Shown here: positions 41,366 to 52,063 of the stretch, piece by piece
Numbering within the stretch: position 1 is the first letter of the stretch
Layout of the letters: every line of letters begins with the position of its first letter
Assembly (NCBI GenBank): GCA_002269645.1
Contig: NIVC01000110.1
Span: 124,001 to 188,000, forward strand
Reading direction: 5' to 3'
DNA from: Macrostomum lignano
Taxonomy: Eukaryota
Length of the DNA: 64,000 nt
Translations under genes and position numbers: made by a program
The notes under the pieces: generated by a model
The model's database searches: none
Seen by the model: the letters and a program-made list of their open reading frames with translations, nothing else
What the model was told of the DNA's origin: nothing

Positions 41366-42937
41366 ATGAACTTTGCCTTGAAGCCTGCCACGTCTCAAAT
41401 TATCTTTGGAGTTTGTCTGCTGCTTTGGATTCTCCGCTGTGCAGAGTGTTGCCCCATTAGTAAGTTATTAATTTGTTGGTAAGTCTTGCACAAGCATACA
41501 CGTACATATGACCAGGGACGTCGCCATGGATTTTATGGTAGGGAGCAGGACAGATTGAGCGCCACAGGCTCTCATTTTAGCACTTAAGGCACTCATTTTA
41601 GCGCCGCAGGCACTCATTTTAGCGCCGCAGGCACTCATTTTAGCGCCGCAGGCACTCATTTTAGCGCCACAGGCACTCATTTTAGCGCCGCAGGCACTCA
41701 TTTTAGCACTTAAGGCACTCATTTTAGCGCCGCAGGCACTCATTTTAGCGCCGCAGGCACTCATTTTAGCGCCACAGGCACTCATTTTAGCGCCGCAGGT
41801 ACCATTTTAGCGCCTCAGGGTACCATTTTAGCACTTCAGGCACTCATTGTAGCGCCACAGGCACTCATTTTAGCGCCACAGGCACTCATTTTAGCACTTC
41901 AGGCACTCATTTTAGCACTTCAGGCACTCATTTTAGCGCGGCAGGCACTCATTTTAGCGCCGCAGGCACTCATTTTAGCGCCGCAGACACTCATTTTAGC
42001 GCCGCAGGCACTCATTTTAGCGCCGCAGGCACTCATTTTAGCGCCACAGGCACTCATTTTAGCACTTCAGGGTACCATTTTAGCGCCACAGGCACTCATT
42101 TTAGCACTTCAGGGTACCATTTTAGCGCCGCAGGCACTCATTTTAGCGCCGCAGGCACTCATTTTAGCGCTGCAGGCACTCATTTTAGCGCTGCAGACAC
42201 CATTTTAGCGCCGCAGGCCCTCATTTTAGCGCCGCAGGGACTGTTTTGTCGACCTGAAGCAAAATTATTGATTTTAATAATTGGTCAACAAAGGTGGGGT
42301 GTGGAGACGAAGCATTGGCATGTTCCTCCTTATTTTTTACTGTAGGGGGGGGGGACATGTCCCCGCTGCAAATGACATTTCCTTCTGAACAGTCGTTCTG
42401 TGTATTTTCTCGCTGATATGCATTTCTTAATGCGTGATCAGATACTTAATAAGTTATTCAAACTTAAATTACAGCTCCGTGCAAAAATCCTAGCTAGCCT
42501 AAAGTACATGATGTACACGCGTACAAAGGCTAATGTCTAACTTGTGCATGTTAATGTTACTGACCCCAAATTTTTAGCAAAGTCACACTTTATTTTGATA
42601 CTCCGCGTACCAACCAACCGTATCGACCGCAGAAATAGCAAAGGAGGTCACCAAGAGTGCGTTCAACTTCGGCCAGAAGAAAGTCAACAAGCAGCTGTAC
42701 AAAATCTCCGACAAAATTCACAAACCCGATGAAGTGGCCAAACGGGTGTCCAAAATTGAGGCTAAAATGGCGGCCGATGCGTCTAGGCGGGCGGCGGCCC
42801 AGGCGGCCGAGAAAGCGGCCAAAGAGGCGTCCGAGCGGGCGGCCAGAGAGGCGGCCGAGGCGGCTAAGAAGGCAGCCGAGGAGGCCCTGAAGGCGTCTAG
42901 AGATGCGGCCAAAGCTAAGAATAATCGATGGGGTTGA
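41366..42937 (+). CDS. Secreted cationic helical peptide precursor, cluster member 1 (132 aa)
   Basis: Exon 41366-41459 MNFALKPATSQIIFGVCLLLWILRCAEC|CPI (phase-1 donor A|GTAAGT) plus exon 42633-42937 KIAKEVTKSAFNFGQKKVNKQLYKISDKIHKPDEVAKR...Ala/Lys/Glu-rich tail...NNRWG*. Confidence 0.85.
41565..42240. repeat. 21-bp minisatellite GGCACTCATTTTAGCGCCGCA, intronic
   Basis: Tandem copies inside the intron of the 41366-42937 gene. Confidence 0.93.
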
Positions 42938-43428
42938 CCAGCAGAAACTGGGAAGCAGTCGCGTGTGTGATTGACTTTTATAAATTTGTTCTACCTATCT
43001 AATCATTTGGAGTTCATAGGCAGCTTCTGGATGTTGAACTTTTGCGGCCGGGTCGACTTGTGAATTTCGAGATAGTCACGTGATGCGGCAAAAATTTTCC
43101 GGGTTTCTTACTTTTACAGATTTGTTTTACTTATTTAAGGATTTTCTAATTCAGCTTACCCAGTATTTGATGGATTTGGAGCTTAGATGTAAAATGCATG
43201 TAAATGGTAAGTTTCTTATTTTTATCACCCTTGTTTCTAAAGAATATAGTTTATTTTTTCGAAAATATTACAACTATTGTTTTATGTATGCTTGCATTTC
43301 ACGCTCGTATTTTTACAGTAAATAAAACGTATTATTTAGCTTACCACTGACTTGCTTAATAAGTATACATGCACATGCATTATGTTTTAGCAAGTTTATG
43401 CTTTTTCTTACTTTATTGTAGCCCATTT

Positions 43429-43530
43429 GGGGGGTGTAGCAGCCTTGTGGTCAGAGCGTCGGACCTCACGATTCGAAAATCGAGGGTTCGATTCCCGATC
43501 CCATTTGTGTCTTTAAATTCCAGCATTGCT
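43429..43530 (+). mobile_element. Truncated tRNA-head SINE
   Basis: A-box-like TAGCAGCCTTGTGG and B-box GGTTCGATTCC, then CCGATCCCATTTGTGTCTTTAA shared with 45604-45897. Confidence 0.55.
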
Positions 43531-43734
43531 TACAACAAGTATAATTACATTAGGTAGAAAACAATGTTAGAGCTGTTTGCGTCGTGACTTATTTAGAGAC
43601 GAATCAATAAATTTAGTTCTGCTTCCGGGTGCCAAAATTAGACGGCAGAGAGCAACGAGCGACGGTCTGCTGCGACAGAAGCTGCACCACGTACGCTCGT
43701 ACCCGCTTACAGGCTGAAATTATTGATGTGGGGG

Positions 43735-49202: not shown

Positions 49203-49664
49203 ATTGCAACACTTATTTGTTAAATTTAAATATTTTCTGACTACGTGCTCTTATTGCTTACTTTAAGTAGCACTTTTAGACCTATTTTATTGTCTTGGAG
49301 TAGTAAGAAACTCGAGTGAACCATTAATAATCTGTGTTAGGTAATGCGAAACCTTTTGCATGACTGGTAGAAGTAATTTTTTTGTTTTTTTTTCATTGAA
49401 ACACGACAACACGACGCTATGTCGATAGTGGTTACAAGTTTTATTTTGTTGAAAATGCAATTTGGGAATTTCATTGTTAACAACATTAAATAAACAAAAA
49501 TATAAAAGAAAGGAAATATTTAAGTTACGTGTAACTATTTTTGAAGTATTTTTAACTGAAAACAAGAATTTACATCTTAACTTTAAACGAGATTTATTTA
49601 AAGTTAGACATTTACAGTAAATTTTCTGAAACGTTCCTAATCATCTGATTTAACCGCATTTAAC

Positions 49665-50440
49665 ATTAGTTAGTTAGTTAGTTAGTTAGTTAGTTAGTTA
49701 GTTAGTTAGTTAGTTAGTTAGTTAGTTAGTTAGTTAGTTAGTTAGTTAGTTAGTTAGTTAGTTAGTAAGTTAGTTAGTTAGTTAGTTAGTTAGTTAGTTA
49801 GTTAGTTAGTTAGTTAGTTAGTTAGTTAGTTAGTTAGTTAGTTAGTCAGTTAGTTAGTTAGTTAGTTAGTTAGTTAGTTAGTTAGTTAGTTAGTTAGTTA
49901 GTTAGTTAGTTAGTTAGTTAGTTAGTTAGTTAGTTAGTTAGTTAGTTAGTTAGTTATTTAGTTAGTTAGTTAGTTAGTTAGTTAGTTAGTTAGTTAGTTA
50001 GTTAGTTAGTTAGTTAGTTAGTTAGTTAGTTAGTTAGTTAGTTAGTTAGTTAGTTAGTTAGTTAGTCAGTTAGTTAGTTAGTTAGTTAGTTAGTTAGTTA
50101 GTTAGTTAGTTAGTTAGTTAGTTAGTTAGTTAGTTAGTTAGTTAGTTAGTTAGTTAGTTAGTTAGTTAGTTAGTTAGTTAGTTAGTTAGTTAGTTAGTTA
50201 GTTAGTTAGTTAGTTAGTTAGTTAGTTAGTTAGTTAGTTAGTTAGTTAGTTAGTTAGTTAGTTAGTTAGTTAGTTAGTTAGTTAGTTAGTTAGTTAGTTA
50301 GTTAGTTAGTTAGTTAGTTAGTTAGTTAGTTAGTTAGTTAGTTAGTTAGTTATTTAGTTAGTTAGTTAGTTAGTTAGTTAGTTAGTTAGTTAGTTAGTTA
50401 GTTAGTTAGTTAGTTAGTTAGTTAATTAGTTAGTAAGTTA
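49665..50440. repeat. (TAGT)n microsatellite
   Basis: Near-perfect run. Confidence 0.97.
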
Positions 50441-50679
50441 GTAAGTTATTTTAAAACCGAGTAGTGTAAGTTAACTGGTTAGACCATAGAGATACTGCAA
50501 TCATAAGTTAGATTACTTATTCTTTTAAGGAACGAATTACTGAGAACTTGGGAATGCGTTCTTACAAAATATGATGCGCAATTGATGCATCTACTTTATA
50601 GCCATCGCAAGCCATTTCAATAACAAGTAAGTCATCCTGCTGTCTATTGAGCAGTTTAGCAGCTCAACCCGCTATCGAC

Positions 50680-52063
50680 ATGCGCATGTGGCGGTTTCTG
50701 TTCATCATAGCAGCACTCAGTCTCGTCATCATGAGCACCTCAGTGGCTGACGGATGCCCAAAGAGTAAGTTTTTTGGATGTCGCCAAAATTTTATTTGCA
50801 CAGATTTGCACGCAAGTAGACTCCAGTGCTAGCTGTTAGATAGCTATCTCAAGTGTTAGACTCTGATGTCAGCTGTTAGAGACATCTGATCCGTTAGACA
50901 CACAGCTGTTGGACACACCACAGCTGTTAGACACACCACAGCTGTTAGACACACCACAGCTGTTAGACACACCACAGCTGTTAGACACACCACAGCTGTT
51001 AGACACACCACAGCTGTTAGACACACCACAGCTGTTAGACACACCACAGCTGTTAGACACACCACAGCTGTTAGACACACCACAGCTGTTAGACACACCA
51101 CAGCTGTTAGACACACCACAGCTGTTAGACACACCGCAGCTGTTAGACACACCACAGCTGTTAGACACACCACAGCTGTTAGACACACCACAGCTGTTAG
51201 ACACACCACAGCTGCATGTTAGACACACCACAGCTGTTAGACACACCACAGCTGTTAGACACATAAGAGCTGCATGTTAGACACACCACAGCTGTTAGAC
51301 ACACCACAGCTGTTAGACACACCACAGCTGTTAGACACACCACAGCTGTTAGACACACCACAGCTGTTAGACACACCACAGCTGTTAGACACACCACAGC
51401 TGTTAGACACACCACAGCTGTTAGACACACCACAGCTGTTAGACACACCACAGCTGTTAGACACACCACAGCTGTTAGACACACCACAGCTGTTAGACAC
51501 ACCGCAGCTGTTAGACACACCACAGCTGTTAGACACACCACAGCTGTTAGACACACCACAGCTGTTAGACACACCACAGCTGCATGTTAGACACACCACA
51601 GCTGTTAGACACACCACAGCTGTTAGACACATAAGAGCTGCATGTTAGACACACCACAGCTGTTAGACACACCACAGCTGTTAGACACACCACAGCTGTT
51701 AGACACACCACAGCTGTTAGACACACCACAGCTGTTAGACACACCGCAGCTGTTAGACACACCACAGCTGTTAGACACACCACAGCTGTTAGACACACCA
51801 CAGCTGTTAGACACACCACAGCTGCATGTTAGACACACCACAGCTGTTAGACACACCACAGGTGTTAGACACACCACAGCTGTTAGACACTGGTGCCATC
51901 TGTTAGACGTAAAAGGTAAAATTTCAAAACTCAAGTGAATGCCAAAAATTTGCATGCAGGAGTCGCGATCGCCGTACTGAAGGCTCCGTACAAAATCTTC
52001 AAGAAAGAGGCAAACAAGGGACTGTTCAAGCTGGCGGACAAAATCCACGGAGTTAGATATTGA
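50680..52063 (+). CDS. Secreted cationic helical peptide precursor, cluster member 4 (62 aa)
   Basis: Exon 50680-50764 MRMWRFLFIIAALSLVIMSTSVADG|CPK (phase-1 donor A|GTAAGT) plus exon 51960-52063 RVAIAVLKAPYKIFKKEANKGLFKLADKIHGVRY*. Confidence 0.85.
50845..51890. repeat. 18-bp minisatellite ACACACCACAGCTGTTAG, intronic
   Basis: Fills the intron of the 50680-52063 gene. Confidence 0.95.

Follow-up and report, generated by a model that had tools for sequence, protein, structure and literature searches.

A tandem four-gene cluster of Macrostomum lignano encoding small secreted, basic, predicted-helical proteins with a candidate male reproductive role

Among described systems, a likeness to the locus considered here is found in the Drosophila Cecropin cluster and its neighbour Andropin, where small genes, four of them in tandem in the cluster, encode a signal peptide and cationic amphipathic helical peptides. 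Each Cecropin or Andropin gene has a single intron, and Andropin, which lies next to the Cecropin cluster, is male-specific, belongs to the ejaculatory duct, is antibacterial and evolves fast. Our locus lies at positions 41366-52063 (+ strand) of a 64,000-nucleotide stretch of Macrostomum lignano DNA (contig NIVC01000110.1, positions 124,001 to 188,000), the whole of which we call the window, and it holds four small genes, named here M1 to M4 in their order along the strand. We read them, with moderate confidence, as a tandemly duplicated, genus-restricted family of small secreted, very basic, predicted-helical proteins that belong to the testis region of adults and are probable male reproductive proteins.

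The comparison with Drosophila reaches only so far. There is no detectable sequence similarity to cecropins or Andropin, with neither a PF00272 match nor a match outside Macrostomum in either of the two profile searches described below, and membership of the cecropin family was rejected on the Pfam scan of the four precursors (E up to 1). M1 and M3 carry tails of 70-85 residues that cecropins lack, M1 and M4 are expressed at testis level and not in an ejaculatory duct or fat body, and any antimicrobial activity of M1-M4 is putative. Cecropins are short, with ~35-40 residues that form a helix-hinge-helix; of our products, M4 has 37 residues, and M1 and M3 have more than 100 unless they are processed. 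A flatworm parallel is offered by the helminth defence molecules (HDM; FhHDM-1, Sm16/SPO-1), which are secreted, largely helical proteins of ~8-16 kDa that include a cationic amphipathic helix, their signal peptide being encoded by exon 1. HDM genes have four exons, their conserved amphipathic helix is C-terminal and comes from exons 3-4, and accounts of the family have it as specific to trematodes and parasite-host directed; M1-M4, on the other hand, have two exons and an N-terminal conserved module. Membership of the HDM/Sm16 family was thus rejected, and the profile searches, in which NCBI and UniRef were included, returned this locus alone, the comparison being made through those searches. 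In M. lignano itself, the prostate seminal-fluid transcripts (Mlig-pro1-76; Weber et al. 2018), localised to the prostate gland by in situ hybridisation (ISH), include many short, secreted, lineage-restricted male products, and they form a large share of the tail-region expression class (Brand et al.). M1 and M4, in contrast, fall in the testis-region class, and the motifs of the family are absent from the supplements of Weber et al. 2018, which were covered in part; we thus do not count M1-M4 among the Mlig-pro products. A described set that does hold members of the family is orthogroup OG0010921, to which M1 and M4 belong (listed as Mlig027090.g1 and Mlig011746.g1).

The gene cluster and its protein family

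Models rebuilt from the sequence give four tandem genes on the same strand, each of two exons (aa, amino acids; N-module, the N-terminal cationic module described below; helices are predicted):

M1 (Mlig027090), 41366-41459 + 42633-42937, + strand: 132-aa precursor
M1 exon 1, 41366..41459, + strand: start codon, signal sequence, conserved Cys-Cys-Pro-Ile; phase-1 end, GTAAGT donor
M1 intron, 41460..42632, + strand: 1173 bp; 21-bp minisatellite at 41558-42242, ~33 copies
M1 exon 2 coding, 42633..42937, + strand: cationic N-module to DKIH, KP kink, 68-residue Ala/Glu/Lys-rich helix, NNRWG-stop
M2 (unannotated), 45472-45562 + 46318-46478, + strand: 83-aa precursor
M2 exon 1, 45472..45562, + strand: signal sequence, Cys-Cys-Asn-Pro-Ala; phase-1 GTAAGC donor
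M2 exon 2 coding, 46318..46478, + strand: divergent cationic module (KAIKFITKAPLKASKK...), RRR at mature 27-29, short tail
M3 (Mlig010865), 47577-47667 + 48853-49202, + strand: 146-aa precursor
M3 exon 1, 47577..47667, + strand: signal sequence, Gly-Cys-Pro-Ile; phase-1 GTAAGC donor
M3 intron, 47668..48852, + strand: 20-bp minisatellite at 47749-48769, 51 copies
M3 exon 2 coding, 48853..49202, + strand: N-module as helix-GG-helix, DPGR linker, helix, Pro/Gly-rich disordered stretch PGQLPGQLSPGKVPP, C-terminal helix, AMGR-stop
M4 (Mlig011746), 50680-50764 + 51960-52063, + strand: 62-aa precursor
M4 exon 1, 50680..50764, + strand: signal sequence, Gly-Cys-Pro-Lys; phase-1 GTAAGT donor
M4 intron, 50765..51959, + strand: 18-bp minisatellite at 50901-51890, 54 copies
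M4 exon 2 coding, 51960..52063, + strand: N-module alone, then GVRY-stop; mature 37 aa, net +8

All four introns have a GTAAG donor and a GCAG acceptor, are in phase 1 and occupy a shared position, splitting the fourth or fifth codon counted from a conserved Cys (3-4 codons past it). An AATAAA signal follows the coding end by ~384 nt in M1 and by ~212 nt in M4; within 450 nt of M2 there is neither AATAAA nor ATTAAA. The locus is present in three assembly copies (contigs 110, 691 and 3410), and a translated search of the window and the two sister loci returned M1-M4 as the only family members, with no extra copies or pseudogenes. Among the four 400-bp upstream regions no 8-mer is common to three or more and a TATA-like pattern was matched at M4 only, so that a shared promoter motif was dropped; Rfam and tRNA scans of the window gave no matches. 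The introns consist mostly of minisatellite, different in each gene (41558-42242, 45942-46243, 47749-48769 and 50901-51890, with units of 21, 23, 20 and 18 bp and 13-54 copies).

With signal-peptide cleavage placed immediately before the conserved Cys, the mature products have the following lengths, masses, net charges and isoelectric points (pI):

M1 mature: 104 aa, 11.3 kDa, net +12, pI 10.0
M2 mature: 57 aa, 6.7 kDa, net +14, pI 10.7
M3 mature: 119 aa, 12.8 kDa, net +18, pI 10.5
M4 mature: 37 aa, 4.2 kDa, net +8, pI 10.2

The precursors have hydrophobic signal cores (mean Kyte-Doolittle hydropathy 2.8-3.5). Cleavage is ambiguous: by the -3/-1 rule each protein has 2-4 permitted sites, of which all four share only the one that precedes the conserved Cys. 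Each mature product has one Cys. M1, M3 and M4 share a module of 33 residues, with the consensus C-P...K11...N22-K23-x-L25...D30-K31-I32-H33, in which C1, P2, K11, N22, K23, L25, D30, K31, I32 and H33 are invariant in an ungapped alignment, and their pairwise similarity stands at z = 12-22 against shuffled sequences. M2 is aligned in the same register with weak similarity to the others (z = 2.4-4.2), and its membership thus rests mainly on its position, strand and identical gene structure. Beyond the N-module, M1 and M3 continue into long helical tails (that of M1 with net +6), M2 into a short one, and M4 has none. Potential dibasic processing sites are found at mature positions 40-41 of M1 (KR) and 27-29 of M2 (RRR). 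M1 closes with ...NNRWG-stop (42926-42937) and M3 with ...QAMGR-stop (49191-49202), and such Gly or Gly-Arg endings usually mark a peptide for amidation; in M2 and M4 the last residue is Tyr.

AlphaFold2 (AF2), run with a very small family alignment, predicts for M1 a helix at 2-32, a kink at Lys-Pro and a second helix at 35-102 (mean pLDDT 84), within which the uninterrupted 68-residue Ala/Glu/Lys helix reaches pLDDT 90-95. For M3 the model has helices at 3-15 and 17-33 separated by a Gly-Gly break at 16, a linker, a helix at 40-63, the disordered Pro/Gly stretch and a helix at 86-116, with pLDDT 61. A helix-hinge-helix arrangement of the N-module is predicted in the low-pLDDT model of M3, which splits at G16, and the M1 model has a single helix from 2 to 32. 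The basic residues of the N-module are spaced every four positions, which places the peak of the hydrophobic moment at 90 degrees and not at 100. Amphipathicity over the full 33-mer as one ideal alpha-helix was dropped, as a fraction of 0.08-0.25 of shuffles reach the observed value. Over the best 18 residues the moment is 0.54-0.56, a modest excess given that 0.03-0.095 of shuffles reach the same level, and it falls within the range of 0.51-0.89 computed for magainin, melittin, cecropin A and LL-37. The moment of the tail has its peak near 95 degrees, a sign of a possible Ala stripe.

A preliminary description of this DNA, made by a model from the letters alone, had proposed four same-strand two-exon genes, each with a signal-peptide exon and a phase-1 intron, and all of them could be rebuilt with the boundaries it gave. 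Its ungapped alignment of M1, M3 and M4 and the shared positions are correct, as are the 37-residue length of M4, its net charge of +8 and its Lys at 11/15/19/23/27/31. Its picture of secreted, cationic and helical products is borne out by the signal sequences, by net charges from +8 to +18 and by the predicted helices. The description of the products as 33-37-mer peptides did not hold for two of the four, since M1 and M3 are proteins of 11-13 kDa of which it had quoted the N-termini only.

It had also called the family apparently undescribed. The spliced M1, M3 and M4 products are letter for letter the GenBank proteins Mlig027090, Mlig010865 and Mlig011746 of M. lignano, and the annotated gene spans on NIVC01000110.1 agree with the rebuilt models. 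RNA-seq transcript assemblies and TransDecoder, not ab initio prediction, are the source of this GenBank annotation (PMC5730564), and the junction pairs 41459/42633, 47667/48853 and 50764/51960 therefore have transcript support; the M2 junction 45562/46318 is unannotated. What stands of the original claim is that the family with its DKIH motif corresponds to no named one, as judged from Pfam, the PDB, Foldseek and two profile searches, and what does not stand is its novelty to the record, as three members are annotated in GenBank and M4 and M1 are in OG0010921. The orthogroup tables (PMC8662610, PMC10092323) already hold M1 and M4, as one row among ~1000; those papers do not treat M2, the arrangement of the genes in tandem, their exon-intron structure, the CP...DKIH module or the chemistry of the proteins.

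M2 (45472-46478) is absent from every protein source searched. It has an intact frame of 83 codons with the same gene structure and splice signals in all three assembly copies, and it is probably a divergent, unannotated member of the family; it may have been lost from the annotation to a filter against repeat-overlapping transcripts, or it may be weakly expressed. M4, for its part, has its 62-aa sequence in a UniRef cluster named 'NTR domain-containing protein'. We rejected this label, since no Pfam domain was found and a precursor of this size has no room for a netrin/TIMP-type module; it seems to be an error of automatic naming.

The searches for relatives were uniformly empty beyond the locus. 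A Pfam scan of the four precursors (E up to 1) gave nothing beyond noise, a PDB sequence profile search gave an unrelated best hit at E = 0.07, and Foldseek returned zero matches for the M1 model against the PDB. A profile search of 5.8 billion proteins matched four clusters, all of them this locus in its three assembly copies, and in 1.84 billion representatives, searched exhaustively with HMMER, there were three matches, all from this locus; in those databases the family is thus found in M. lignano only and is confined to the cluster. The Mlig gene identifiers had no match in searchable full text, and the family does not occur in the supplements of Brand 2020, Grudniewska 2018, Mouton 2018 and Weber 2018, where coverage was partial and absence is weak evidence. 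As far as is visible from sequence searches, the family is most likely restricted to the genus Macrostomum.

Expression, selection and the likely role of the family

In the study of Wiberg et al. (2021, MBE; PMC8662610), M4 (Mlig011746.g1) is the M. lignano member of OG0010921_1_MIortho1, an orthogroup of 8 species in which sperm bristles are present in 6, reduced in 2 and absent in 0. As the M4 orthogroup spans 8 species, the family exists in at least 8 Macrostomum congeners. The orthogroup row assigns M4 to the 'Testis region', in the upper expression bin, with a single omega of 0.218, and a branch-site test on the reduced-bristle lineages gives a likelihood-ratio statistic of 19.46 (p = 1e-5, q = 0.0011), with ~34% of sites at omega 2.9 (PMC8662610). 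M4 shows overall purifying selection (omega 0.22) together with episodic positive selection. A 2022 paper in Evolution (PMC10092323) lists both M4 and M1 (Mlig027090.g1, OG0010921_1_MIortho4), each labelled 'arbore2015_testes_region / Testis' and 'Up-in-A'. Its main text describes a comparison of expression in adults and hatchlings, and we therefore read 'Up-in-A' as significantly higher in adults. Testis-region transcripts mostly overlap the germline class (Brand et al.). Between the assembly copies on contigs 110 and 3410, M4 has four coding differences, all four synonymous (P ~0.003). M2 and M3 show a pN/pS of ~0.55 between copies, a ratio based on few changes, and M3 also has a 5-aa indel in its PGQLPGQLSPGKVPP stretch. 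The coding identity of M1 between copies was dropped as a sign of constraint, since its unique intron and flanking DNA are equally identical.

The preliminary description had left the role among defence, venom, mucus and seminal functions. The testis-region class of M1 and M4 and their adult-biased expression favour the male reproductive option over the other three, and the site of action is probably the testis lumen, the sperm or the ejaculate. In such a role exon 1 would direct the protein into the secretory pathway, the signal peptide would be removed, and the cationic helix-hinge-helix module, as the putative working part of the protein, could then bind anionic surfaces, electrostatically and through a narrow hydrophobic face, with sperm or partner membranes, glycocalyx and microbial membranes as candidate targets. 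Through the single Cys near the N-terminus the proteins might form disulfide-linked dimers, in M1 and M3 the long helical tails may serve self-association or spacing, and exposed residues would change rapidly under sexual selection or conflict, as they do in male reproductive proteins elsewhere.

Several points weigh against the male reproductive reading. 'Testis region' is a class of body level and not of tissue, and when candidates of this class were checked by ISH, four of six were testis-specific and two of six were in gut cells at that level (Arbore et al., PMC4490696). M3 (Mlig010865) and M2 were not found in the orthogroup and expression tables, which were covered in part. Alignments that are short and fragmented may, as the authors of the selection study caution, exaggerate branch-site signals. 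ISH, proteomic or RNA interference (RNAi) data on M1-M4 were not found in the searchable literature. Furthermore, the binding mechanism is one proposed from composition, and the cleavage site is ambiguous in all four proteins.

Of the other explanations, the one closest to the male reproductive reading, with which it partly overlaps, is that of reproductive-tract antimicrobial peptides (AMPs) like andropin, in which the proteins or their N-terminal fragments would permeabilise membranes and keep microbes from the testis, the sperm or the ejaculate. The chemistry of the family agrees with this: M1-M4 have the signal sequence, positive charge and predicted amphipathic helix of the linear cationic alpha-helical AMP class, the predicted helix-hinge-helix and the 18-residue moments inside the reference range point the same way, M4 is only 37 residues long, the dibasic sites of M1 and M2 could free N-terminal peptides, and the last residues of M1 (Gly) and M3 (Gly-Arg) are of the kind found in peptides that become amidated. 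There is also the precedent of Andropin, a male-specific antibacterial gene beside a four-gene cluster. The AMP-like pattern claimed in the preliminary description thus stands as regards charge and the 18-residue moment. It is weaker as regards amphipathicity, which is only modestly above that of shuffles, and the Lys periodicity peaks at 90 degrees and not at 100. M1 and M3, moreover, are large for such peptides at 11-13 kDa and their tails are unlike the usual acidic AMP pro-regions, that of M1 being positively charged; there is no cecropin Pfam match, and the activity itself is putative. We regard this explanation as unlikely, although it is the main rival. The two of the six candidates of Arbore et al. 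that were expressed in a subpopulation of gut cells raise a different prospect, that the family consists of products secreted by a specialised gut epithelium lying level with the gonads, digestive or acting in the gut lumen as antimicrobial or lytic proteins against diatom or bacterial food. Secreted cationic amphipathic helices would suit the lysis of ingested cells. Hatchlings are expected to have a working gut already, so that the bias of M1 and M4 towards adults, as we read the label, would be unexpected for a gut gene; testis-region transcripts mostly overlap the germline class, and rapid, episodically positive evolution fits reproductive genes. A gut function is thus, in our judgement, distinctly improbable.

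The very confident 68-residue helix predicted for M1, the long C-terminal helix predicted for M3 and the possible Ala stripe of the tail would also suit proteins that build or pack secretory granules or the dense bodies of sperm; their Ala-rich tails would form coiled coils and their basic module would condense anionic cargo, without direct membrane activity. The conserved part of the family, on the other hand, is the N-module, M4 has no tail and that of M2 is short, and neither Pfam, PDB profile nor Foldseek searches matched a coiled-coil or silk family, so that we give such a role a small probability. The same C-terminal Gly of M1 and Gly-Arg of M3, together with some dibasic sites, could be taken as marks of a neuropeptide or hormone precursor that is processed at basic sites and amidated. 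There are, however, no repeated peptide units between dibasic sites, the conserved module is a Lys-rich helix of 33 residues, and testis-region, adult-biased expression is not neural; this we consider extremely unlikely. Finally, the male reproductive reading has a more specific form, in which the conserved Cys-Pro would be the true mature N-terminus, N-palmitoylated by a homologue of Hedgehog acyltransferase (Hhat/Rasp, with Hedgehog and Spitz as substrates) or disulfide-dimerised, and the proteins would be putative male-derived, membrane-active effectors, delivered with sperm, acting on rival sperm or on membranes in the organ where the partner receives sperm, and shaped by sexual conflict. 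The testis-region class, the adult bias and the branch-site signal on reduced-bristle lineages are in keeping with such a role. Minimally, a Hhat substrate has Cys at its N-terminus, may have Pro in position 2 and needs a basic residue among its first seven (PMC8061759). The N-termini CPIKIAK, CPISLTK and CPKRVAI fit them only if cleavage precedes the conserved Cys, and other -3/-1 sites exist; among proteins that have Cys at the N-terminus, known Hhat substrates are a minority (PMC8061759). To this specific form we attach very little credence.

Neighbouring DNA in the window

The spacers between the genes are also rich in arrays, and arrays of a similar kind occupy much of the remaining window. 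Array lengths vary among the three assembly copies, and the M1-M2 spacer is ~5 kb longer on contig 691. At the sister loci, a gene for an insulysin-type peptidase comes after the cluster on contig NIVC01003410, and on contig NIVC01000691 a gene with ankyrin repeats is located upstream of it. Downstream of the cluster lies a mobile element of 10.6 kb, which resembles Maverick/Polinton elements by its terminal inverted repeats, its 6-bp target-site duplication and its integrase, with no polymerase identified. Its insertion is recent or polymorphic, as the sister contig NIVC01003410 has an empty site. The features outside the genes of the cluster are as follows:

43735-44972: spacer array, 19 bp x 65
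46632-46934: spacer array, 16 bp x 19
49666-50448: spacer array, (TTAG)n x 196
52446-52778: 83-bp unit x4, 98% identity, between the 3' end of M4 and the insertion site of the mobile element
53047-63603: 10.6-kb mobile element; perfect 595-bp terminal inverted repeats (53047-53641 / 63009-63603), target-site duplication CTTGGG
53805-54458, - strand: P-loop ATPase-like open reading frame of the element, recognised by eye
58215-58829, - strand: rve integrase of the element
62079-62876, - strand: Fic-domain protein of the element
6126-6932 and 8962-10233, - strand: two large DEG/ENaC exons (amiloride-sensitive sodium channel, PF00858) with a repeat-filled intron between them
11620-12738, + strand: uninterrupted 372-aa mariner/Mos1-type transposase open reading frame; HTH_48 above the Pfam curated cut-off, HTH_32, Transposase_1 and DDE_3 below it
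24666-25187, + strand: exon of an AH-receptor-interacting-protein (AIP)-like gene, coding for its N-terminal FKBP-type PPIase domain (PF23322)

Several further open reading frames of the element have no Pfam match and may be protease or capsid genes.

Significance for the biology of Macrostomum

Sperm competition and sexual conflict are under active study in M. lignano, a species for which RNAi, ISH and transgenesis are available. The compact four-gene cluster provides an experimental handle there, with products that are secreted, abundant, of the testis region and adult-biased, and that combine a conserved module of 33 residues with fast-evolving surroundings. Lipidation or dimerisation, together with delivery alongside sperm, would make these cationic helices a striking class of effector, and if the peptides were antimicrobial, they would be a flatworm counterpart of andropin. 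As it stands, the cluster would add, at the confidence given above, a further example of male reproductive proteins that evolve fast and have a narrow taxonomic range, and it opens no new class of system.

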